Assembly (NCBI GenBank): GCA_021613535.1
Contig: CP075496.1
Coordinates: forward strand, 3,224,001-3,288,000
DNA length: 64,000 nucleotides
Origin: Adineta vaga
Taxonomy: Eukaryota; Animalia; Rotifera
Direction: 5' to 3'
Position numbers and translations under genes: made by a program. Shown piece by piece: positions 27,264-63,289 of the stretch. How positions within the stretch are numbered: the first letter of the stretch is position 1; each line of letters starts with the position of its first letter. The notes under the pieces are model-generated. The model saw nothing but the letters and a program-made list of their open reading frames with translations, did not search any database and was not told where the DNA came from.

Positions 27264-28569
27264 TTATTGTGATGTTGGATGTTTTGGTTTTTGAGCATCA
27301 TCTGATATAGCTTTTCTTCCTGATGATTTTTGTCGCATTCGTGTAATCTTCACATTTTCTTTACTATCAATACGATATTGTGTTAAATCTTCTTTGTGTT
27401 TTTCGATATCTTCATAAATTTCTGCTCGATCATCATCATGAATTTCTGTTCGATATTGTCTCATGATATCCCATTGACGCCATGGTTCACTATAACGTTG
27501 TGCTGCTTTACGTACACTTCTGGGTAATGATGGTAAAAGAACACCTTTCAAATCATGACGTTCCCATTTATATTGCCAATGAGTACTTGTAATTGGTACC
27601 TAAAAATGATTTGTAATGAATTAATTGATAAAAAAAAAGTCGTACTTGAATGGTGTTCAATGGTACACCCGAACCTGGTGGTAATTTTACAGGTTCCATA
27701 TCAAATGGAAATGTACAATATTCTGGTGGTGCATCACGTAAATAAGCAAGATTTTCATCTAAACGTCGTTCAAGTTTAAGAACTTCAATTTTCGTTATTG
27801 TTGGATTATATAATTCATAGACAATTTCAACACCTAGATAAATAGTTTGTCTTTCAAAAATCAAATTCTCAGTTAACTTTTATTTATTCTTACCAAGTCC
27901 ATCAACAATATTTCTCAAAGTAAATTGATGTTTAAGGCCATGTCTTTCACGTTGAATGCATATACCAACAAATCTATTACGTCGATTTGGTGAATATGGA
28001 TCAGCCGATGTTACAGCAAGTACACTTCCTATTGATATTGAAATTGAAATTGTTCTATTATTTAAACGATTTTTCTTTGTCGAATGATAAATACATACCG
28101 ACATAAAATTCTGGAATATCGATTTGTTGTCGTCGACGAAACATATCTTTACGTTCGAGTTTTTCTAATATACGATCGCGTAGAAAAGGAATTGGATTAG
28201 GTAGAAAATCAGGATAAACATATCTATGAAAACCAATCGATCATTCTTTTTGAATACAAATTTCTTCTCATCTACTTACTTGAAATCATGTGGTGTAGTT
28301 TTTAGATTTAAATTTTTATCATCTTTCGGTGGAAAAACACCTACACCTGCACCAGCTTTTGCTTTCCCTAATGGTGATTGTCTCTGACTTTCGACGAGAT
28401 GATCAGCAATATGTCCACGTTGTTTATAACGAACAGATAATATTAAGACTAAAACAAAATAAGAATCTATTCACTGAAAAAGAAGAAGTTTGTCTTGTTC
28501 CTAACCTGATCTTAATACATGCTGATTATTGAATAGAAATCGATTTGAATTAGAAAATATTAAAGCCAT
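27264..28569 (-). CDS. MRPL19: Mitochondrial ribosomal protein L19 (bL19m)
   Basis: [105 protein letters not shown]. Confidence 0.95.
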
Positions 28570-28620
28570 TTTATAATCAAATATTCATCTGAAAAAAAAC
28601 GATAACAAAACAAAATCAAT
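28570..28620 (-). promoter_or_regulatory. 51-bp intercistronic spacer with an unpaired 3' splice acceptor (candidate trans-splice site)
   Basis: Minus strand: IARS2 stop TAG-attgattttgttttgttatcg-T-run-CAG|atgaatatttgattataaa-ATG(MRPL19); AG at 28589-28590. Confidence 0.6.
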
Positions 28621-31600
28621 CTAAGAATTTTGTAAATGAAAAGAACATCGAGAACATAATTTATCTTCGATTTCAGATATCTGTAAACGACAACGAGGAC
28701 AACTATGTAATGAAGAATGTTGAATTTGCATTACATAATTAAATTTATCATCTAGAATTCATCAATCATTCGTTTCTTTTCCAAGATAATTCAACTTACC
28801 TAACAATGGTAAATCAACACTAGAAATATTTTCTTCTATTAGATTAGTTTCTAAATCAGTTAATGCACGTTGTTCTACACGAGAACATTGTAAAAGTTCG
28901 TCTAATGGTTGCCAAAAATTCAACGGAATCGTCTAAAAATGTATTCCCTTCTGTTTTAACTAGTCGTTTTGAAAGCATAGATTAACTTACTGATGAATGT
29001 TTTCCTAGAACATCAATAACTTGTTTTAACTAGAAAAAATGAAGTTACATGAAATCGAACTATTGTTTTAATAGAAATTCAACCTGAAGTTTTGCTTTGT
29101 CACTTAAATAAAGAATAATATCACATAAAATTCCTCGTCGATTCTGTAACATTCCATGAAAAGTATTACGTATATGAAATACAATTGCCATTGTTGATAC
29201 TAATTCAGGTGAAATTTCTGTATATTGTTTTTCCAGAAAAGTGAATGAATTCTCAAAAACATCCGTGATCTTATTCTCTTTCTTATCTAGAAGAAAAAGC
29301 GATTCACTTGTTAAACTAGTTGTTTAACTTACCTATCATACTCAATTCATTATGTAATTCTTGTGCGAGATATGGCATTACTGGTGCTAATCGTTCGTTA
29401 AGACATTTTAATAATAGATGAAAAACTGTTTGTGTGGATCGACGAAGATATGAATCTGATGGATTGCAATAGAGTCTAGTAAATAAAATGGAGTCATTTT
29501 GGAATCTATTTAAACTCAATTAGCATACCGATCTTTGGTCACTGAACAATAAAAACTTGAGATTTCTCCTTGAATAAAATTTTCGACCATAATTAAACCA
29601 TGATACATTTTATATTGATCAAAATCATCATGATACTAAAATATATCAACATTCAATGCAAAGAAGAAATTTTCATCAACTAACAGTTGCTAAAATTTGT
29701 TGCAATCGATAAACCATATATCGATCAACTGCTGATAGATTTTCCACGGCTATAGAATGTTTATTCGGTTGATAATCATATAGATTTCCTAATAAAAATT
29801 TCAATACATTTCTTATCTAAAAATAAATTTTTCATAAAAAAAACAACCAAATCCAAATAATTTCTATTCAACTTACATCATATACTCGTTTATAAGCATT
29901 AGTTAAATCTTCAACACTTGCTTTACATTGCTTTTTATAACTTTCTCTTGTCACCCATTCTCGACAAACATCGAAACCATTTTCAAGAAATTTCTCTTTT
30001 CCACCTCCATAGATCATGTGCGATGGTTCAATCACATTTCCAATTGATTTCGACATTTTTTGATTGTTTTTATCAACAACAAAACCATGTACAAATATAT
30101 TCGAAAATGGTGCACGTGATTGAATGCCTGTTGATAATAATAATGAAGATAAAAACCAACCATTGAACTGATCATGACCTTCACAATATAAATCTGCTTG
30201 ATAATTGACATCTTTTTTTTTCAATAACAAACAAAATCAAATCAACATATTATTTTCATTCAATTCAATTGATTACCTTTAAGAATCGAATAAAATGATG
30301 AACCACTATCAAACCAAACATCAAATATATCACTTCCACGCACAAGATTTTCTGCTTGATTATGCATTGATTCAGGTAATAATTCTTTAATATCATTTGC
30401 AGACCACCAAAAATCAATTGAACCTTTTTCTTGGACACATTGAATTAAATGTTCAATAATTTCTTTATTAATAACAAGTTCATTCTTTTCATCTTTTGTA
30501 TAGAAAACAGGAATAGGTACACCCCAACATCGTTGCCGTGATATACACCAATATGGACGTTTAGAAGTCATTGATAGAAAACTTTTTCCTGCGCCTTCAG
30601 GATAAATTTTAACTTCTTCCGAAATAGATTGACATGCCTTATCACGTAATTGAGTTGTATTAAGAAACCATTGTTGACTACCTAAGATTACAACAGGTTT
30701 CTTTGCTCGCCAATCATATGGATATGAATGAGTCAATTCATAATGATGTAATACATTAGAATTTAAATATTTTAAGATTGCTTGAATACCATCATTTGGA
30801 TTTAAGGCATTACGATTATGAAGAGATTCTATAGTTGGACAATGTAAATGACCAGCTAGATTAACAGCATTAACACATTGAAGATTATATTTTATTGATA
30901 GAAGAAAATCATCAGAACCATGTGCTGGTGCAATATGAACAAGACCAGTACCTAATTCATTCGTTACATGATCACTAGAAACAATCGGATAAGTTGCTGT
31001 TTGATCTTGATAAATTGGATGATAATATTTCAAATTAGATAACTGAGAACCTAAAGAAAAAGAAAAGATTTCTACTGTTAAAATAAATCTTATTTTGCTT
31101 ACCAAGACAATTTCCAATAATCTCAAATTGTTCACCAGAAAATGGTGGATATTGTTTAATGTTATTGAATAAAGATTCTGCAATGATATATGTATCATTT
31201 GTCGAAGGAGATTTTAAGAAGAGATATTTGAAATTTTCATTGACAGCTACAGCTTGATTGCCAACTAATGACCATGGTGTTGTTGTCCAAATTAAAGCAT
31301 AAATATTGTCTAGATTACTTTCTAAAAGAAAATAATGAGAAATGAATTATAAGAAGATTTCTTACGTGGTAAGAGTTTTGCTAAGGAATCATCATTTTTT
31401 AAACGAAATCGAACGTAGATAGCAATACTAAAATAATAGTAATATTTCTTTATTTATCAACCATATGAGTTTTGGGTTTTCGTGATAATTACCTTTTATG
31501 TTTATCATTATATTCTAATTCAGATTCAGCTAAAGCAGATTGTACTGTTGGTGACCAATTCACTGGTTTATATTGTCGATAAAGTAGATTCTTAAAGAAA

Positions 31601-32440
31601 AATAGGATTTATATATACAAACAAAAGTCTTCTATATGTACATACTTTTTCATATAATTTCCAAAATAATCTTATTTGATCAATAATATATTCTTTATCC
31701 AATGTTCGATAACAATGATTCCAATCAGCTAAGATACCCCATGATTGAAACTCAGCTTTCTGTTTATCCGATGTTTCAGTAGCAAATTGACGAGCTATGG
31801 AAATCAAACGATACGAATGAAAGTTATTGCAAATGAAATAAAAATAAGTATTTACCAAGTTTACGAATAGTTATTGGATCTTGATCAGTTGGTTTAGTTT
31901 TATTTTTTTGTAAAGCTTTTAATTCAATGGGTAAACCATGACAATCCCAACCAGGACGAAAATCTATTCGATGTCCGGCTAATAATTTATATCGAACAAT
32001 AATATCTTTTTGAATCTGTAAAAGATGAAAATCAATAATCGAAAAGCAACCGATTGAAAACATCGCTAACTTTATTTAAGAAGTGTCCAGTATGAAGAGG
32101 ACCATTGGCATAGGGTGGACCATTATGTAAGACAAATAATGGTCGTTGTGTTTGTTTCGATTGCCAATCCCACAATTGACTAACAGGAAATCTCTAAAAA
32201 AATACATGAAGTTTTCCATTTCAAGAAAATTCCATTCATCTTTTTCTATTCTCCTAATGTGAAAACACATCAAATTGAACAAACCTGTTTAATATCATTT
32301 TCTAATTTCACTCGATTTTTCATTGTACTCGCAAATTTACTCTTCGGCATATTGAGTGTATCTTTGTATGATATGCTTTTATTTGAGACATATCGTAAAT
32401 TTCTTTCGCAAAAATTTCGACAACCAAATAAAAGTCTCAT
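28621..32440 (-). CDS. IARS2: Mitochondrial isoleucyl-tRNA synthetase
   Basis: [15 protein letters not shown] (HIGH motif), [58 protein letters not shown] and a C-terminal CPRC..CSRC zinc finger. Confidence 0.96.
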
Positions 32441-32739
32441 CTAGTATACACAGAGAACAATATATAGATATATAAAGAAATATATAAGACTTAAATGAGA
32501 CAATAAATAAAATGAACACACACGGACAAAGACAATGTTTAAAAAAATGAGGCAATTGTATCCATCGCTATCGAAGGATATCCAATCTCAAATGTTTGTT
32601 TTGTTTTTTCTTTTTTTTTTCTACTAAAATAAATGAAACGAATGACTAGTTGACAATGTTATATTAAGAATGATGATTATCGAAAAGAAAAACAGAATAC
32701 AGTGTAAAAAAAAGCAAAGCGTATTGAGATAAGTTTATT

Positions 32740-33752
32740 TTATTTCGCTTTCGCATTTTTTGCTCGTTCAGCTTCATCAAGAGCAGCCATGTCAAGTGAA
32801 GCTGTATATAAATGAATCAAGCTGATAATTTGTTTTCCGACCATGATTGGTGTTACAGCATAGAGAATAACACGCCAAAGACCAATGGCATATTTACCAA
32901 TAGTAAGTACTAAAATCATGGAAATAATTGATAAAAAATCTAGCAGATAGAATGTTAGTGAAATTTACCGGCAGGACCTTCGCCGAAATGAATCATATAG
33001 ATCATTGAAAACCAAAGTTCATTTCCTGCACACATGGTAAAAAGCACTTTCTATAAATAGATTCATTGAATTTGATCTATTTCTTTGAAATGTTATTCTT
33101 ACGCGTGAGGTATAGTAAAGACGAAGTATTGGATTACCAGATAAATCAATTTTCTTATGACTTTCTGATCCTTTAACTGTCGCTCTAAAATCATAGCAAT
33201 TGAGATAAAAATCATTAGAAAATGAAAGAGAATTTACGCATGTAAATGAAGCCAATGACTGGCAACATCAATAGCAGCCCAAAGTTGAAAGAATAATGCC
33301 CATTTCGGATAGAACATGGCCAAAACAAAGCACAAACACATTGTTGAACATCGATCAATCAACATATCAAACATGGCACCGAATTTCGTGCCTAAAACGT
33401 ATTCCTCATACATTTTTCATCTCATTCATAATAGTAAGACTTACTTTGACCAAGTGCTCGTGCAGCATGTCCATCAAGTGCATCAAGTAATTCGCTTGTT
33501 AAATAACAGAATATTGTTATTTTCGGATGTGTTGGCATAAAATAAAATGATACAATTGAAAGAAAAACTCGTAGATAACCTAAGAAATACATAAGATATT
33601 GTATGATACTTGTAGGTAAAGGTTTTCATCTCACCAATTATATTCGGAATAAATAAAAAGATATTATTTGTTTTTAATAAAGCATCTAATGAATCAATTG
33701 TCTGTGTTTCTGATGAAACTTTTCTAACCGGTGAAGTAGTGGTACTTGCCAT
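32740..33752 (-). CDS. CDIPT: CDP-diacylglycerol-inositol 3-phosphatidyltransferase (PI synthase)
   Basis: NIFLFIPNIIGY..LLDALDGHAARALGQ..KFGAMFDMLIDRC..DVASHW..SHKKIDLSGNPILRLYYTSR..CAGNELWF. Confidence 0.95.
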
Positions 33753-33798
33753 TGTCTGTTTTATTACAAAAACAAAGATCTGAAAGACAAAAATAAAT
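33753..33798 (-). promoter_or_regulatory. 46-bp intercistronic spacer with an unpaired splice acceptor and an AATAAA
   Basis: Minus strand: METTL4 stop TAA-atttatttttgtctttCAG|atctttgtttttgtAATAAAacagaca-ATG(CDIPT). Confidence 0.6.
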
Positions 33799-35345
33799 TT
33801 ATGAGACACTTATTTCTTCAAATAAATCGATCGATTGATGTTTCAAAACCTAAGAGAATGAGAAAAGTAGGAAGCAGTGGTTTTTATCATCTTTCATAAA
33901 CATCTTTACTTCATTTCCTACAGATGTAAAATTTGGTAAGAGATTTCGTGCATAGATTTCTAAACAATGATCACTCTCATCGTTTGGAAACTGAATTAAA
34001 TTTTGAAATAATAAATGTAATGCTGGTTTTGTTGAATGTATCAATGCAGGCACCTAAATAAATCGTTGATTCGAAAAAAAGAAAGAAAGAAAGATATTGA
34101 ATACACTGCAAATGATTTTTGTTGTATTTTTTAATGTATCAAATCGATCATCATTGTCAGTATAACCAAGTATCAATGTTTCATAAGATTTTTTATCCGT
34201 TGAGGTTAAATCAAGAACTGCTTCACCAGAACGAGTTACCTGAAAAGCAAACAATATGTGTTTACTAATATTTCGTATAGAAGAGTAAGATTTCATTATA
34301 CTTTTAACCAATACCAAGTAGTTAAATATTGACAATTCCATTTCTTAAATAAATCATTTTTAATAAAATCTTCGATTCGATCACAATTTGTCGACCAACA
34401 ACAAATTAACGATGAATGTGTTCGATCAATTAAATTTTCGACTGGTAAATTTTTTATATCATCAAAATCTGACCAATGATATGGACGTTTTCGTCGTACA
34501 CTTTTATTTAACCATGGAGGATCAACAACAATAAATGAATATTTTCTTCCATCTGAAAAAGAAAGAACAAACAAATCATGATTTAATAACTAACTCAATG
34601 CTTACCATTTACGAGTAATTTCATATTTTTCATATCCGCCCATAAAAATCGACACTTTTCTGGTAGTACAATTTGTCCTGCAATAGCAGTATCAATAATG
34701 CTTGCATGAGGTTTATCGTGCGTATAAAGAAGATTTGTTTGTATACCCAATTTTGATGCACGAAGAAAATAATCTATCATGATTATGTATAAAAACTTAT
34801 TTTCAAAAATTCATCTTTTTACCAGTTAAAAGAATTTGTTGAATAGGTGGAATTCGATCATTTTGTTGAGTAGCGATTTCAGCAAAAGGAATATCATTAA
34901 ATGAATGTTCAGTTTGAATCAATGAAGTATCATGAATGAATGATAATTTATCTTTACAAAAGTTAGCTGCTTCATTCAACTATATATATAAACATAGTAT
35001 AAAGAAGAAGAGTTCGTCGATAGTCAATTCGTTTACTTTTGAAATTAAATCATTTTGAGTATCGTCGAATGCTTCATCGTGACTTCGTTTCTAAAACAAA
35101 TGATTGAAATATTATTTTTAACGTATGGAAAGAAAAAACAAACTATTTGCTACAGGCAAAGAATCGTATGATCCCAAGGTTGAATGTGAGTATTTTATGC
35201 CAATCACGTTAGAACATGTAGATGACGAAGAGATACATAAAATAAGTATCTAATTACTCGAAACGTTATGTTCTGGTGGGGAAAATATTTTCTTATCATT
35301 ATTTATCCTCCTTTTTTCTCTCACGTCAGATAATCTCATCGCCAT
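33799..35345 (-). CDS. METTL4: MT-A70 family N6-adenine methyltransferase (METTL4); 5' exon uncertain
   Basis: IVVDPPWLNKSVRRK, WSTN, TTWYWLKVT, KKSYETLILG, SVPALIHSTKP, LEIYARNL..GNE|VLKHQSIDLF; last exon 33849-33799. Confidence 0.9.
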
Positions 35346-36471
35346 CTGAACCGATTTGACAAGAATTATACTGAAAGCGTATAATTCCATCCGGATTTAT
35401 CCTTTTACGGCAAAGAAATAGATTCGATTGCGTGCTATAGATTGTCGTTAATGCTTAATTAGTATTTTGAAAAACAGGAAGTTCTGTGAGACTAATAGTT
35501 ATTTTTGAGAAAGTGCATAGGTTTTAGTTAATCTCTTGCTGATATAATATACTGTAGCTCAAAACTACTCCTACCGCATTTGTGTTGTTATCGTTCTTCT
35601 TCTTCTTCTTCTTCTTTTTCGCCATTTGTTCGTTATTTGTCCTCCGAAATGGTTGTTCTACATAAAACAAATCTTTCCTCCACGTCAAACTTCTTATACT
35701 ATCAGCTTCTACACTTTGTCTCCAGTTCTTGGTATGCGTATAAGTATGATTTAAAAATTTGATTTGATCAAGAATGACACATTCTTTGTCGTCGTGGCAA
35801 TGAATCATTACCAATCTAAAGAATATATGTAACGTGGCAAGTTATATTTATCTCTATGGAAGAAAAGAAAGAAAAACATGTTCATTGCTTGTAATTCATC
35901 ATGTTTTTGAAAAATGACAATCGAAGAAATAGAGAAATGAACAGAAATGAATTTTTGTTTGTTTTACAATGCAGAGAATTTCGAAGGAAAAAAAAGAGAG
36001 AGAGATTGAGAAGACACATGTTTCTGAAACACACTTCGTTGAAATATCCTCCTCCTTCGTATTTCTCTAAAACTTTTTCAGTAAGCTTGTCTTTGTTTTA
36101 CACAATACATTGACAAAACAATACATAATCTAGCAAATCGATAGAACAAAGATTAGATATTCATATGTCTCACTAGAAGATAAAGATAAAGAACTAAACA
36201 CACACACAAGGAAATTGTTTTCTCTCAATATAAGAAATCGAAATAATATATATATGTTCAAGAAGATGAAAAAAAAAGAGAATACCGCTTACCAAATAAG
36301 AGAAACAAATAAGAAAAAGTCAGAGAATTGACCTTGACAAGAATAAAGTGATACGCAGCCAGAATAAAGAGATGAAAAGAAATCAACATATACAAAAGAA
36401 AAGAAAAGAAGAAAGAAAGAAAAATGAAATAAATGGATTTGATTTAGTTCAAAAATGTTTAATTTTTTTTC

Positions 36472-37932
36472 TTATTTACGTGGTCGTAATTTTCGTGCGT
36501 ATTCTTCATTTGAGTCGGGTGTTGATGCTGAAGATTTTGGAGTTTTTCGAGTTCCACTTGTACGTGCTTTTTTCGTTGGAGTTTGAAGTGGTTCACTTTC
36601 AGCAGGAACAGCAGCAGCAACAGCAGCAGTACTAGTAGTTGTTGTTGATGGTGCTACTGTATTGTCTACATCCATTTGTTGTTCATCATTTGTTGTACTG
36701 GAAGCTTTTCCTTTGGGTGATACTTTTGCTTTTTTTGATGCGCTCACTGATGGTGAAGATGATGCACCACGTTTTCTTCCAGCAGCTGCTGACGTTCGGC
36801 CACCTTTACGAGGTGAGGGTGTTTCTTCTTTCGTTTTACTACCTGATGCATCATCATCATCATCACCTTTATCGGCTTCTGATGGAACTGCATCTTTCTC
36901 TGTTCGATCATTGACTTCATCTGTTGAACTACTACCTATAAATGTACCAAATAATAAGTAAACAACTTTTTTGTTGATTATGGAAATAGATTGCTTACCT
37001 GCTTGAATAGCATCTGCAGCTAATGCTGCTGCTTGCCGTTTTGTACGCTTCGGTGGAGATGAAGGTTCTGGTTGACTTGTTGTTGAAGTATCAACATCAT
37101 CTGTTTCTTTTTCTACTTCATCATTTTGCGATGATGATGTAACAGGTTTTCGACTACGTGTTGATTGACGTGTTGGAGTAGTTGATACTACTGGAGATTT
37201 GGCTTTACCACGAGGAGACTATATAATACAGAAAATAGATTTAAAAAAAAACAACAGAATATTTCCAATTACTTTGCTCTTTTTCTCTGGTGTTGTGGTC
37301 GCTTCAGCTAGAACAGTTGCTTTTGGAGCTGTAGCAGATGCAGGAACATTATCAATGGATGGTGTAATTGATTTCGAGTCTGCAGAAGAAGAAGGATTTT
37401 TTGTAGTAGTAACTGATGCCGATGATAAATCTTCTTTTCCAGCATCTACTGATGTTGATAATGCGGATTCGGGTTCAGTTGGTGCTGATGCATCACTTGG
37501 TGCTGTTGGTACAACACTATCCATTAGTTGATCAGAGTGTACTGGTAAAGGATCATTTTGACTTGATTTTTCAATCGGATCTGGTACTCCTGATTCTGAA
37601 ATAGATTCTTCTGTCGGATTGACATTATCTTTTGTTGTTGTATTGACAGCTGGAAGTGTTTCAATATCTGTTTTACCATTTTGACCATTAACAGGTCCAT
37701 TTGCTGAATTATTTGCACTCGCACTTCCACTATCTAGATTTTCATTTTTTTTATTATCATTTGAAATATCATTCTGTCCATTCTTCGTTAATTCTGGTGT
37801 TGCTAATTTCTCGCTTCCACCTAAATCATTATTCGGTTGTTGCTGTTGTTGAATTTTTGTATTTGATACTCCACTACCAAAGACAGGAATCGATGAGTTT
37901 GGATCTTGATCATCGACTGATTGCATCGACAT
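36472..37932 (-). CDS. Intrinsically disordered, basic-tailed nuclear protein (histone H1/AT-hook-like motifs)
   Basis: Three exons; S/T/P/E-rich N-terminus; SPRGK, SPRKGGR, SPKGK, TPTKK and KRTKRQAAALA motifs; C-terminal RKLRPRK. Confidence 0.7.
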
Positions 37933-39956
37933 TAGAATGTATTTTAATAAAATGAAGAAAATCTAAAAAAAATACCAAAGGTCATTCAGTTTATTCAGTG
38001 ATTTTTTTATCCGAGTAAACATTGATCGAAAAGGTAAAACTAGCTCCTATCTTATCATAGACAACTTTACATTCGAAAGTAAAGAAGAAAAAAAAGGTTT
38101 GTTTTATTTTGAATCACGTTTATTATTAACCTCTGAACATCTTTCTATTCTCTCTCGCGTTCTCCCTTTCCTTTTTTTTGAACACTTGCTACTCAGTCTT
38201 TGTTCAATGTAAAGTGCATAAGTATGTTAGATCGTAAAGGAAATGTAATTAACATGGAAAAGACATGTTCTTTATTGTTTTGTTCTAGCATGTCTTTAAA
38301 ATGAAGAGATAAGGCACAATAATAATCATTTGATCCATTTTATATTAATCAATATGTTTTAAAAGAAGACAGAAAGAATAAACGAAACGATTTTCATAAC
38401 AAAAATAAAATGGCAGACCACAACTATGAATTTGATATGATTATAGAAAGAAGGGAAATAAACAACAAATAACGAAAGCGACATCATTTGATTATGCGGA
38501 AATTCTCCAATCAACTATTTTTCAATTCACTCTATTGACTTTGAAGAGACCAATGAAACCAACCAAAGCTATTTACTTTCTCTTTCTTTCTGTCTGTCTA
38601 TCAATCAATATATACATACATTCAGCGACACCATATACTTTTGACAAAGATCTCAAACAAAGCATCAGTCGAATTTGATGTGTTTGTCTTTTTAAGTCAT
38701 TTGAGACTAAATCTTCGTAGTGTTTTCTAAATTAACTACAATAAACAATGACTATCATCGATAATCTTGATATTTCGCCGATCTCATTACTTAGAGTTCA
38801 TAAAACTTATGCTCAAACGTTTTTTGCATTTTAATCAGATGTCGGAAGTTTAATCTTTCCAAGCAAAAGGCACTAAATAATGAAGGTATATTTGTGTATA
38901 AACCACTTGCTAGTTGATGGTTCTTCTTTCACTCTTGTGGATACGTCAACGACTTTGAGCAGACATCAGTTCAGGCCAGATTATTCGGATCATCAGCAGA
39001 CAAACTTCATTGATATCGAAAGAGCTGGTCTAAATGATAGAAAGATTAAAGTTAATGTAAACAGACAGCAATTTTAATATATCTAATGGAATATACGACA
39101 ATAATTAGCAGATGCTATTATTGTTTCTCTTTCTTGTCTATTTATTTATGCTTCTGTAGAAGTAATTCTCCTTTCAAACTAACGCAAATAGAGTCATCAA
39201 GGCAAGGACAGTAAAAGAAAGCTGCATTTGTCTCTTTGCTTTTTCAAAATTATCGAGAACTTTAGATTTACACAGGAACAAATTTTAAACTAGCAAAGAA
39301 GTTCGATAGATCTGCATGTGTTTTCTAACAAAATATTGAATTCTACATAATAAAACTACGATGATATTGATGTTGTTCAGACGATTGAAATAGTGAAAAC
39401 ATCATGATTTGAATATTTGCAAAAATAAAAGTTATATTCTAACATGTTACTCATAGGTAATAAACATATCACGAGGCATCTTTGTCTGGATTTTTCAAAT
39501 TACCAAGAATAAAAACATATTTTCTTGTGAAATTCTATCTTGTTTCTTATACCTTAAGAGATATCACTAATGAACCCATTAATATGTAATCGGATGTCGT
39601 TATCCACATCATTATTGATATACATATTAAAGTATTTCGAATATATTTATCTCTACTAACGATGGCTGAAGTCTAAAATTGTCACAGTAAAGAAATAAAG
39701 ATTCTATTTATATATATATATATATATATTACAATCGCTGTTAGTATTTGTCGTTTTACCTGTATCGAATAGATTACTCAAGATAAATTTGATCGGAAGA
39801 GAAAACAACTGATCATTATCAATCGCTGAATCTATCAATCATAGTTTGTTTTTCGTCGATATACTTTTTTCTCTCTCTCTCACTTTCTATCCAATGAATC
39901 ATATATAATGTTTGTCTTATTTTCTTTTTTTGTGTATGTATAAATAAAATACAGTA

Positions 39957-59302: not shown

Positions 59303-60389
<1,087 letters not shown>

Positions 60390-60554
60390 TTTAATTGTTT
60401 AATGAAATGAAACAAATCTGAAAAAGAGTTTCTAGAATCTTAGTCTATACTTAGAAAAAAAAAGAATTTTGGATATTTAAAAGCGACAAAGAAACCGGAT
60501 GATATTGGTAGAATGATCATTTAAGAAAAAAAGGGGAAAGAAGGAATATTCAGT

Positions 60555-62056
60555 TTAGATAAGTCCTTTTTCTTTCAATTTACTAATCAATTCATCGACA
60601 CTCGCGACACGGCCACCACCTTGTCGTTTGGGTGGTTCTTCATATGAAAGATATTCTTGGTGAGGTTTGATATCAACACCTAAATCCTTTGGTGACATTT
60701 TTGCCATTGGTTTTTTCTTGGCTTTCTAGAAAATAAATCATTTAATTTCTTAAATTCAGATATGGAAACTTACTTGAATTGATGGAAGATTAGCAAAACG
60801 TGGTTGATTAAGACGAAGATCAGTAGTAATCACAGCAGGTAATTTCACACGAATTGTTTCGGAACCACCATCGATTTCACGCATTACTTCAGCCTTCTTA
60901 TCTTTTATCTCCACTTTCGAAGCAAATACAGCCTGAACGAAGAAAACAAAGTTTATTTTAAGAAAAAAGAAAATATAAAGTTTTCTACCTGAGGCCAAGA
61001 AAGAAGGCCAGCAACCATTTGACCTGTTTGATTTGAATCGTCATCAATGGCCTACATAACAAAATAATAATTCACACTACAAATTATGAATTTAGTAAGT
61101 ATCTTAGAATCTAAAGTTGAACCCATTTTATCTTGTAAGATGAAAAGCAAGTTCATATATTACTCGAATGATTGATGGGACTAATAACTATTCCACTGAT
61201 CGATCCTATATGTTTATGAAAGCTAACTATTACTTCTTCTTGACGTGACAAATAAAATTAACATATTTTAATATTATAGATGCTTGATAATAGTAGTCCA
61301 TATTATTTTGGGAAAGAATAAAGCATAAATATAAAAGATTATTAAGAAGTAATGTTTTTTTTTGTTATGAACAGATCGAATGAATGAACACAAATCATCT
61401 GTATGTATAGAATAGTTAAAAAGGTTGATGAATATTCAAAACGAATTAATATTACTAGAGAAGAGAAAGAACAGATGTTACTCTTTCTCAACCTTTACAA
61501 TGATCACTCATATTTTTTAGTTCATAAAGAAAAACAGAATCGGTTCGAATCAATCTTTTTGAGTTTTTCCTATCAACGACTTATTCATATATATATATAT
61601 ATATAAATTCAACTAACCAATTTTCCTAGAAGGACTAAATCAACATTTTCCTTCTTTGCAACAGCAGCAATTAATTTTGAAATAGCTAATGGTTGTAATG
61701 TTTCATAATCTTTGCCAGCAACTTCCACATGTATTGCTCGATCAGCACCTAATGCTAATGCTGTTCGTAATGTTTCCTTTAGAGAGAAGAAAAAAACAAC
61801 AACTCATATAGAAACTATCATGTGAATTCGTCAAGATTCCTACTTGACATTGAGCTGGTCCACATGAAAATGCGATAACTTCTTGAGCAACTTTTTTTTC
61901 TTTCAAACGAATTGCTTCTTCCACTGCGATTTCATCGAATGGATTCATTGAATGTTTAACTCCTTCAGTTACTACTCCACTTTTATCCGATTTTACTTGA
62001 ATTTTAACGGCATAATCAATTGCTCGTTTGACACCAACTAAAATTCGTATTGCCAT
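60555..62056 (-). CDS. ETFB: Electron transfer flavoprotein beta subunit
   Basis: [85 protein letters not shown]. Confidence 0.97.
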
Positions 62057-62174
62057 CTGAAAACAGAGAAAGAAAGACAAACAATTTCAATCATTGTTTT
62101 GTTTTTATTCTTCTAACAAACAATCAATATGATTTTATTCAGATTGAATAATAACAATAACAAAAACAACATCC
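62057..62174 (-). promoter_or_regulatory. 118-bp intercistronic spacer: two AATAAA, a U-rich tract, and an acceptor abutting the ETFB ATG
   Basis: Minus strand: BRIX1 stop ... AATAAA ... AATAAA ... ttgtttgtctttctttctctgttttCAG|ATG. Confidence 0.6.
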
Positions 62175-63289
62175 TTATTCCGAATCGTCATCGTCGTCAT
62201 CGTCATCGTCGTCGTCATCATCATCGTCATGATTGGGTGGTGGTGGTGCTGGTGTTTGAAAAATTTCATCAGTTTTATCATATGGAAAACTTTCTTCGGG
62301 TTTCTTTTGTTCATAAGCGAGTTTTTGATGAATACGTTGTTGATATTTACTTGATGCTTCAGCTTTCGCTAAATGACGTTTCAAATTCGGTGCAACATAT
62401 AATGGATTTTCATAGATCAACATTCCGGAAAAACTTTTCTCGAAAATACAATGTAAATTAAGAACAAATCTAAGTAAAAAACAAAATTTCAAGAAGATTG
62501 TTTAAAAAAAAACAAACAATCGATTTACCTTGGACCAATTTCAGCTAATGATCCATTTTCTTCAACAATTTGATAGTTTCTTAACCAAACTTTATTATCA
62601 ATGATAGAAAATGTTAGAACATGATCAATGAATGGTTGAGATTTGGGATGTGATTTTGGTGTACCGAAAATTTGTGTAAATAATTCTTTAATTAATTTCC
62701 AATGTGGTTCATCATCAAATTTCTTATCAAATGACAATAATGGTCGTGAACCACGTAAACAATTTCCAGTTAATTTCAATCCTTCCATTGTATGTAAATT
62801 TTCAACAAGAAATTTTACTGTTGGACCATCAGGTACTGAAGCCATCCATAAATAAAGATCACGTTTTTTTTTCATATCGAAAAACAGGATCTTATTACAA
62901 TTACGTAATTCAGCTATTTCATTAAGAACAGAGAAATTTTTACGTAATTCAGCTTTCGGTTCACTTTTAGAATGTGCCATTAATCCACGAAGATTTTTCA
63001 TCACATGACGTGCTAAATAAGATATTCCACGCGATGAAAATATCAACACACGTTGTTTATTAATCCAGGTTGATTTCATCGATTGAACCGTATCGGATGA
63101 ACGTGTTGATGGTAAACGTTGCACTATGGATGAAGTCGAAGTCGGTGCTGGACCTAAACGACGAATATTCAACGATTCATCATTGTTATCTTTATCGAGT
63201 TGTTCTTGTCGACGAAATTTTCTTGATCTTTTTTCAGGTCGATTTTGTGCAACTGTGGGAGCTGATTTACGTTTATTGGTTTTAGGCAT
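62175..63289 (-). CDS. BRIX1: Ribosome biogenesis protein BRX1
   Basis: WINKQRVLIFSSRGI, DLYLW..GPTVKFLVENLHTM..LTGNCLRGSRPLLSFD, SQPFIDHV, EIGPR|FVLN; acidic poly-Asp tail. Confidence 0.96.

Follow-up and report, generated by a model that had tools for sequence, protein, structure and literature searches.

That rotifers trans-splice a spliced leader (SL) has been known since 2005, and no rotifer operon is reported in the literature searched. The 'hybrid' operons of Caenorhabditis elegans have internal promoters. C. elegans operons are of SL2-type and SL1-type (PMC1488885, PMC1657053), and in both tunicates and nematodes the anatomy considered here, combined with SL trans-splicing, is regularly polycistronic (PMC1488885). 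Upstream cistrons in Ciona operons mostly lack AATAAA (PMC1488885). Chaetognath operons, for which the criteria in Paraspadella gotoi are location on one strand, spacing under 250 bp and SL evidence, are enriched for housekeeping genes and contain 18% of genes (PMC12460157).

The window analyzed here, a stretch of 64,000 nt from the bdelloid rotifer Adineta vaga (contig CP075496.1, positions 3,224,001 to 3,288,000), carries four minus-strand genes head to tail: METTL4-like, CDIPT-like, a mitochondrial-type IleRS (IARS2) and MRPL19. Co-orientation and stop-to-ATG gaps of 46, 299 and 51 nt, as given in an initial annotation, were borne out when the minus strand was read with exon models built on RNA joints, and AG acceptors stand in all three spacers where that annotation had placed them (33781-33780, 32442-32441 and 28590-28589). 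These RNA-guided models close as open frames; gene models with minimal introns were dropped as wrong. The features, with the evidence for each in brackets, are as follows.

37963..37964, minus strand: AG of a putative outron acceptor of the METTL4-like gene, TTTTTTTTAG-AT (sequence reading).
33799..37932, minus strand: MT-A70 (METTL4-like) gene, first of the run, stop at 33801-33799 (Pfam MT-A70, PDB match, conserved 5' blocks, open spliced path).
33753..33798, minus strand: junction 1 spacer, 46 nt, with a TTTCAG-AT acceptor (relatives, RNA contig).
32740..33752, minus strand: CDIPT-like gene, 6 exons, 246 aa, ATG at 33752 and stop at 32742-32740 (Pfam CDP-OH_P_transf, closed frame).
32441..32739, minus strand: junction 2 spacer, 299 nt (RNA contigs, relatives' alignment).
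28621..32440, minus strand: IARS2-like gene, mitochondrial-type IleRS, 16 exons, 987 aa, ATG at 32440 and stop at 28623-28621 (Pfam tRNA-synt_1, RNA joints).
28570..28620, minus strand: junction 3 spacer, 51 nt, with a TTTTTTTTCAG-ATG acceptor (relatives, transcript L033).
28577..28588, minus strand: mini-uORF in the MRPL19 5' UTR, ATG plus 2 codons plus TGA (directly after the junction-3 acceptor).
27264..28569, minus strand: MRPL19 (bL19m) gene, 6 exons, 338 aa, last of the run, ATG at 28569 and stop ending at 27264 (RNA joints, Pfam Ribosomal_L19).
About 24.6-25.5 kb, plus strand: Ig-domain gene, next downstream of MRPL19 (Ig domains).

The proposed gene identities hold at family level, exon by exon, in Pfam searches run with single exons one at a time (MT-A70, CDP-OH_P_transf, tRNA-synt_1 and Ribosomal_L19), although the name CDIPT goes no further than the family and the earlier reading because a solved-structure search with a CDIPT exon returned no match. 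The MT-A70 domain was matched on exon 34302-34550, which matches a single solved structure, chain 7cv6_B ('Methyltransferase-like protein 2'). All five CDIPT-like introns are seen as RNA joints, and the IARS2 model agrees with RNA joints and with contig record lengths. Relatives of the IleRS exon are named isoleucyl-tRNA synthetase by their sources (one of them mitochondrial), and those of MRPL19 are named bL19m. CDIPT alone among the four genes has a second copy in the assembly; IARS2 is single copy.

One boundary required correction, since the start of the METTL4-like gene is at 37932 and not, as first annotated, at 35345. Three upstream coding blocks (37932-37222, 36747-36475 and 35814 to about 35574) are conserved on the same strand in L022, L024, L025 and L026; in L022, a 63-nt in-frame intron links the last of them straight to exon 35090-35037, itself lacking a start codon; and a spliced path stays open all the way from ATG 37932 to the stop at 33799. 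Position 35345 therefore falls within an intron that, at about 480 nt, is unusually long. The gene is well modelled over its 3' exons, from 35090 down, and the part from 37932 to about 35574 is predicted from homology. With this correction the cluster spans 27264-37932. The putative METTL4-like acceptor lies 31 nt upstream of the ATG, with AT-rich non-coding DNA extending for over 1 kb before it. The run is flanked by a long non-coding region upstream and by the convergent Ig-domain gene downstream.

Trans-splicing in this organism, which the initial annotation took as established for bdelloids, is well founded. With the published 23-nt rotifer SL as query (PMC3795323, Table 1) and matches taken at 1-2 mismatches, at least 59 SL RNA genes were found in the genome, in which a GT donor follows the SL, as does a conserved part of the SL intron; the reversed SL gave 0 genome matches. 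The genes form one SL family with single-base variants, and the genome search returned no second, operon-specific SL class. RNA was surveyed as assembled Logan contigs from four runs over 28200-34100. Among the listed contig loose ends, none was SL-bearing A. vaga RNA at the three acceptors; short dead-end tips drop out of Logan contigs. In the fetched loci of relatives, the 14-nt SL core was not found at up to one mismatch, and the only SL trace is a 6-nt remnant at the very end of transcript L033.

This remnant falls at junction 3. L033, a spliced, Rotaria-like MRPL19 transcript (one metatranscriptome contig, with 92-96% DNA identity to a Rotaria sordida record), opens with CAAGAG-ATG where all genomes read TTTCAG-ATG; CAAGAG is the last six bases of the SL, joined exactly at the site homologous to the junction-3 acceptor. 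The Rotaria sordida genomic record L094 lacks the MRPL19 5' end. Transcript L089 begins 5 nt past the acceptor of its own genome, L026, and transcript contigs L090, L091 and L092 have incomplete or uninformative 5' ends. In A. vaga itself, an MRPL19 contig end at 28590 in run X1 fits an overlap with the ...AG of the SL, with no SL letters listed, and the MRPL19 contig in run X4 continues about 10 nt past the acceptor into the upstream gene. A mini-uORF (ATG, 0-6 codons and a stop) recurs at this position in 10 of 11 bdelloid lineages, including transcript L033 and Didymodactylos L093, which suggests that the SL junction serves translational control.

Comparison with other rotifers sustains the layout as first described: order, strand, short spacers and acceptors are conserved across bdelloids. 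Shared order and strand for the cluster extend to at least 5 bdelloid lineages. All four genes keep order and strand in L024, L025 and L026/L027, and the first three do so in L022, where the contig ends inside IARS2; identity of the big IARS2 exon to these loci is 73-81%. IARS2 followed by MRPL19 is found in nine lineages including the window (others include L034, L037, L047, L050/L077 and L051). The linkage is absent from a Didymodactylos carnosus record, from Brachionus calyciflorus and from L028, a locus of 46% identity. Such conservation of linkage goes beyond neutral synteny and supports an operon, without defining one.

The two tight junctions have the short distances of operons (46 and 51 nt, and 31-67 nt in relatives). 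At junction 1 the gap is 31-50 nt, with TTTCAG-AT in the same place, in L022, L024, L025, L026 and L027; at junction 3 it is 48-67 nt, with TTTCAG-AT(G), in nine lineages counting this window. Both spacers have diverged apart from the T-rich tract and CAG-AT. By chance alone, a YAG would not be improbable in an AT-rich spacer of 50 nt; its constant position in every lineage amid spacer divergence exceeds chance. Canonical AATAAA is absent from the junction-1 spacer in three of five lineages and from the junction-3 spacer in every lineage compared, and the AATAAA at 33765-33760 lies downstream of the junction-1 acceptor. The CDIPT RNA contig of run X1 continues 26 nt past that acceptor, to 33806, into the upstream gene.

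What the acceptors can say about co-transcription is a separate question. Cis-intron acceptors of the cluster genes are mostly TAG (27/31, with CAG in 2/31), so the spacer acceptors are of a distinct kind. The motif TTTCAGAT is not enriched in the window (7 found versus 10.6 expected); its seven occurrences include the acceptors of junctions 1 and 3 and one cis acceptor. An acceptor like those of the spacers precedes the unclustered CDIPT ohnolog on contig 1, and is therefore independent of clustering; one also stands at the METTL4-like start and before Didymodactylos MRPL19, despite the 1.47 kb of non-coding DNA upstream of the latter. Trans-splicing thus needs no operon, and the acceptors indicate trans-splicing rather than co-transcription. 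The initial argument from acceptors to an operon accordingly fails to separate an operon from an ordinary trans-spliced gene.

It could then be that there is no operon at all, only four independent, tightly packed units with promoters in the last exons or introns of their neighbors or in the 299-nt spacer, the SL replacing each short outron and a compact genome merely tolerating the spacing. Genes with the same acceptor design behind long non-coding regions fit this proposal, as does Didymodactylos MRPL19, which works without IARS2 upstream. It sits poorly with spacers of 31-67 nt in every lineage that has the adjacency, in which only the acceptor is conserved, with RNA contigs that cross all three acceptors, one of them spliced and joining CDIPT to IARS2, and with the precedent of tunicates and nematodes (PMC1488885). 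We regard independent units as unlikely, while noting that junction 2 and RNA depth, discussed below, lend them some weight.

Junction 2 differs from its neighbors. At 299 nt it exceeds the cut-offs for operons in Ciona (<100 nt) and chaetognaths (<250 nt), and its length in relatives, 226-305 nt, goes with conserved blocks at about 32566-32559 (GATGGATA) and about 32500-32470 (TGTCTCATTT..TCTTATATA). A conserved TGTTCTCTGTGT.TACTAG directly adjoins the IARS2 ATG, and the acceptor is kept in relatives as CTAG-ATG. AATAAA at 32739-32734 is followed by the CDIPT contig 3' end at 32706 in two runs, 34 nt past the CDIPT stop, and an IARS2 contig in X4 ends at 32527, 87 nt upstream of the ATG. An internal promoter here is plausible, because CDIPT has its own AATAAA and 3' end, blocks are conserved and an IARS2 contig starts 87 nt upstream; the blocks and the contig end would also suit independent units. 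Read-through also has a trace: X1 contig record 1, of 3692 nt, covers the whole spacer and has introns removed on both the CDIPT and the IARS2 side, though a contig over two genes, being assembled, is no proof of one molecule, and k-mers over the whole 299 nt occur in only one of the four RNA runs.

These observations weigh on the strict form of the original proposal, in which one promoter upstream of the METTL4-like gene yields one four-gene precursor and the downstream mRNAs arise by SL addition only. Co-oriented genes between opposite-strand or non-coding flanks, conserved gene order with acceptors at all three junctions and the X1 contig bridging junction 2 are what such a precursor would leave. 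A CDIPT 3' end of its own, spanning k-mers in a single run and a spacer conserved in both length and sequence blocks are not; nor is the Didymodactylos record, where CDIPT and MRPL19 lie 1.47 kb apart with no IARS2 between them. In all four runs contig k-mer depth, a weak measure, puts CDIPT 5-10 times above the METTL4-like gene and IARS2, and MRPL19 2-6 times above IARS2. IARS2 is the lowest of the four, yet MRPL19 behind it is higher, which again counts against a single precursor; depth greater downstream than upstream calls for differential stability or extra promoters, and favors independent units to that extent. A single promoter for all four genes is thus unsupported, and the strict form seems to us improbable.

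On balance we lean toward a conserved bdelloid cluster made of two tight, SL-resolved, co-transcribed pairs and a hybrid CDIPT-IARS2 link; this probably means two tight dicistrons of the Ciona type, and perhaps a single hybrid operon. Of the polycistronic reading, what stands is a run that is real, bounded and conserved, with conserved acceptors and the SL 3' end at junction 3 in a Rotaria-like transcript; what goes unsupported is the single promoter and the argument from acceptors. CDIPT, IARS2 and MRPL19 would each start at an SL trans-splice acceptor. The METTL4-like and CDIPT genes (46 nt apart), and likewise IARS2 and MRPL19 (51 nt), would most likely come from one precursor per pair, processed in the manner of Ciona or Oikopleura operons: the upstream mRNA would have its 3' end within the 19-32 nt between stop codon and acceptor, in most lineages without canonical AATAAA, after which the downstream cistron would receive the single rotifer SL. 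Given a separate AATAAA and 3' end for CDIPT and conserved blocks in the spacer, the IARS2-MRPL19 pair would probably draw on an internal promoter as well as some read-through, in a 'hybrid' arrangement where the SL replaces a short outron right at the IARS2 ATG.

A wider claim, that bdelloids have Ciona-type SL operons genome-wide, with one or two at this locus and a layout predating the main bdelloid family split, is more tentative, and we would put it just short of an even chance. If true, together with chaetognath operons it would make operons recurrent, and possibly ancestral, in Gnathifera. A documented rotifer operon would add one more phylum to the short list with SL-resolved operons, and would inform the question of whether operons in Gnathifera had one origin or several. 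It would also allow a connection of operons with recovery from arrest, proposed for nematodes (cited in PMC12460157), to be tested in desiccation-tolerant animals. In annotation the consequence is practical: gene finders built to expect a promoter and UTRs in each intergenic gap will merge neighbors like these or cut them short.

Among known systems, Ciona intestinalis and Oikopleura dioica offer a close likeness, with one SL for monocistronic and operonic genes, very short intercistronic DNA and member mRNAs that are not tightly co-accumulated (PMC1488885). Mutually exclusive processing is possible in both settings where the 3'-end signal lies past the acceptor, as AATAAA 33765-33760 does here, downstream of 33780. 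The rotifer cluster differs in its 19-32 nt from stop to acceptor and in one 299-nt junction with its own poly(A) site, and no dicistronic cDNA of the tight pairs is seen among the assembled contigs. With C. elegans it shares same-strand runs of unrelated housekeeping and mitochondrial genes and, probably, trans-spliced downstream genes, and junction 2 resembles the internal promoter of a hybrid operon supplementing read-through; in contrast, there is one SL family here, tight spacers measure about 50 nt against about 100 nt in the worm, and in most lineages the tight acceptors lack an upstream AAUAAA. Chaetognaths have several, different SL sequences and operons shown genome-wide with RNA data, whereas RNA support at the rotifer locus is indirect; the two are alike in belonging to Gnathifera.

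The window occupies positions 3224001-3288000 of contig 4 in a six-contig, 100.8 Mb assembly (G000), has a G+C content of about 30%, and encodes proteins whose relatives include those of the bdelloids Rotaria sordida and Didymodactylos carnosus. Introns are short, GT..AG, and about 45-65 nt long, as judged from RNA joints and exon models. The motif TTTCAGAT occurs at seven sites in the window, two of them (60416-60423 and 62055-62062) within 59303-63289 on the minus strand. Exon models for the gene cluster combine RNA joints with open-frame tracing:

Cluster genes (5' to 3') and the acceptors between them
37932-33799, minus strand: METTL4-like, spliced open path from ATG to stop
33781-33780, minus strand: acceptor AG of junction 1, gap of 46 nt
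Minus strand: CDIPT-like, 6 exons, 246 aa, model closes with no internal stop
32442-32441, minus strand: acceptor AG of junction 2, gap of 299 nt
Minus strand: IARS2 (IleRS), 16 exons, 987 aa, model closes with no internal stop
28590-28589, minus strand: acceptor AG of junction 3, gap of 51 nt
Minus strand: MRPL19, 6 exons, 338 aa, model closes with no internal stop

The junction coordinates and gaps agree with the initial annotation when stops, ATGs, and AGs are read on the minus strand, and the lengths of RNA contig pieces agree with the CDIPT, IleRS, and MRPL19 models. With each exon searched singly, the families matched are MT-A70, CDP-OH_P_transf, tRNA-synt_1, and Ribosomal_L19; the sole solved-structure match of the MT-A70 exon is chain 7cv6_B, "Methyltransferase-like protein 2," and relatives of the IleRS exon carry the source name isoleucyl-tRNA synthetase, one of them mitochondrial.

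One boundary has to be moved. The ATG at 35345, previously taken as the METTL4-like start, is ruled out: it lies within an intron of about 480 nt, and exon 35090-35037 lacks a start codon. Three further minus-strand METTL4-like coding blocks (37932-37222, 36747-36475, and 35814-about 35574) are co-oriented and conserved in all relatives, and in the related locus L022 a 63-nt in-frame intron links the last of them directly to exon 35090-35037; together with the open path to 37932, these observations extend the cluster to 27264-37932. The intron itself (35091-about 35574, minus strand) is long against the usual 45-65 nt, and its counterpart in another relative, L026, measures about 85 nt. The 5' flank of METTL4-like is AT-rich and non-coding for more than 1 kb, a convergent Ig-domain gene lies 3' of the cluster, and the co-oriented genes number exactly four.

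Relatives were found with a 257-aa IleRS exon as query (exon-level identity 66-81%), and their contigs were then fetched. Gene order is retained on one strand in L024, L025, and L026/L027, while L022 retains the first three genes before its contig stops; scanning metagenomes with a part of L026 MRPL19 that lacks introns added the IleRS-MRPL19 adjacency in five more loci (L034, L037, L047, L050/L077, and L051). Across all lineages compared, junction 1 measures 31-50 nt, and its sole common element is a T-rich tract ending TTTCAG/AT (the slash marks the acceptor); junction 3 measures 48-67 nt and carries TTTCAG/AT(G) as well. Of the 31 cis-intron acceptors in the four genes, 27 are TAG and two are CAG, so the CAG acceptors of the tight spacers (junctions 1 and 3) form a distinct class.

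The rotifer spliced leader (SL) is encoded in this genome. The published 23-nt sequence (PMC3795323, Table 1) has 59 genome matches at one or two mismatches, its reversed control has zero, and in each copy inspected a GT donor and conserved sequence follow. The SL RNA genes, at least 59 by this count, are often paired head to head in inverted orientation, 154 bp apart (e.g., L001, L003, L005, and L008). They also form local arrays and lie chiefly on contigs 5 and 6, and the SL exon of several copies contains single-base variants.

One transcript places the last six bases of the SL at the MRPL19 acceptor. L033, a spliced metatranscriptome contig of 1118 nt encoding the full 338-aa MRPL19 (DNA 92-96% identical to an R. 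sordida record), begins CAAGAG/ATGTATTTTTAA. CAAGAG is the SL 3' end, every genome has TTTCAG in those six bases, and the following sequence is homologous to what comes after the acceptor in each of them; a chance six-base match has a probability of about 1 in 4096, with about five transcript ends examined. A spliced transcript of the L026 lineage (L089, 98-99.7% identity) starts 5 nt past the acceptor in the L026 genome and carries no upstream sequence. Four runs from A. vaga, kept solely as assembled contigs, are confirmed as RNA by skipped introns with CT..AC ends. Measured from the first intron, MRPL19 exon 1 is 82 nt in run X6 (to 28587), 85 nt in X1 (to 28590), and 94 nt in X4 (to 28599), the X1 end being the value expected of an SL ending in AG. 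SL letters appear at none of the contig ends listed in the four runs, an absence that means little given that the assembler is expected to clip short dead-end tips.

A further feature begins at the first base past this acceptor:

28577-28588, minus strand: mini upstream ORF (ATG, 0-6 codons, stop)

It recurs in 10 of 11 bdelloid lineages, at the homologous place in L024, L025, L026, L033, L034, L047, L050, L051, and the Didymodactylos MRPL19 record L093; only L037 has ATA. The mature mRNA would carry it immediately 3' of the SL, a placement that suggests translational control or constraint on bases +1 to +3 of the acceptor.

The initial annotation inferred a polycistronic unit, a reading that is partly supported. 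A YAG/AT within 0-31 nt of the ATG also precedes the METTL4-like start (AG 37964-37963), the contig 1 ohnolog of CDIPT, whose upstream non-coding DNA exceeds 400 nt, and MRPL19 in the Didymodactylos record. These three genes lack a close upstream neighbor; the acceptors are therefore good evidence of SL trans-splicing but are not by themselves evidence of co-transcription. The argument that genes are co-transcribed across junctions 1 and 3 is instead that the spacers are too short for a 3' UTR plus promoter, are short across lineages, conserve only the acceptor, and are crossed by RNA k-mers; the X1 CDIPT contig, for example, passes its acceptor to 33806, within METTL4 coding sequence, although a contig spanning two genes does not prove a single transcript. 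We lean toward reading the two tight pairs as SL-resolved dicistrons. That all four genes are fully independent transcription units is less likely. In favor of independence, contig depth of CDIPT is 5-10 times that of METTL4-like or IleRS, and that of MRPL19 2-6 times that of IleRS, in all four runs. Depth is a weak measure, and members of Ciona operons likewise are not tightly co-accumulated (PMC1488885).

Junction 2 is of another character, at 226-305 nt, with TGTTCTCTGTGT.TACTAG strongly conserved and abutting the IARS2 ATG and other blocks conserved too:

Elements of the junction 2 spacer (window 32441-32739, minus strand)
32739-32734, minus strand: AATAAA
About 85 nt 3' of the CDIPT stop: near-palindromic TTG(A)CTAGTCAT (window, L022, and L026)
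About 120 nt 5' of the IARS2 ATG: GATGGATA
About 45-55 nt 5' of the IARS2 ATG: TATA-like TCTTATATA / TTCTATAAATA

The conserved blocks are candidate promoter elements. CDIPT contigs in X4 and X6 stop at 32706, 34 nt past the stop codon and just past the AATAAA, and the X4 IleRS contig stops at 32527, 87 nt 5' of its ATG; X1 holds a 3692-nt contig that contains the entire 299-nt spacer along with spliced exons 1-14 of IleRS and 3-6 of CDIPT. Junction 2 looks to be of a hybrid type: the spacer has a poly(A) site of its own and conserved blocks, transcripts read through it at a low level, and the acceptor stands right at the ATG. A strict four-gene operon transcribed from one promoter could draw on the X1 contig, and with these poly(A) and candidate promoter features between its second and third genes it is improbable.

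Synteny and spacing in other rotifers, a check proposed at the outset, are kept in the bdelloid loci listed above and broken in two records: D. carnosus has CDIPT, 1.47 kb of non-coding DNA, MRPL19, and then DcpS, with IleRS absent, and in Brachionus calyciflorus MRPL19 sits among other genes. An IleRS locus of 46% identity likewise has different neighbors. The cluster is not universal. CDIPT is its only member with an ohnolog (G000 contig 1, 9085650-9086680; L020 7650-8680), which shares 50-98% exon peptide identity and a 74% DNA match with the window copy; a DcpS-like gene, read from translated sequence, follows about 0.4 kb beyond (to about L020 9400). Set beside this neighbor, the D. carnosus order hints that the cluster was once longer and has since been thinned as different genes were lost. 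In a record of the monogonont B. calyciflorus (L095, 2036-6113), DOLK, an unnamed gene, and Med21 also sit close together on one strand, their annotated models about 120 nt apart.

According to a methods paper from 2021, operons have not been reported in rotifers (PMC7986045). The chaetognath genome paper of 2025 names rotifers, loosely and with no rotifer data, as one of the lineages that show trans-splicing and operonic transcription (PMC12460157); our literature searches for rotifer operon reports yielded nothing beyond these two. The AATAAA 3' of the CDIPT acceptor in this genome and L022 is not conserved in L024-L026 and, given that poor conservation, is no basis for a mechanism. Canonical AATAAA is absent from every junction 3 spacer and from three of five junction 1 spacers. 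The two tight pairs would most resemble the operons of Ciona and Oikopleura, in which one SL serves all genes, intercistronic regions are tiny, and upstream cistrons mostly lack AATAAA (PMC1488885). If it is an operon, the cluster would be a phylum-level addition to this known class of system.
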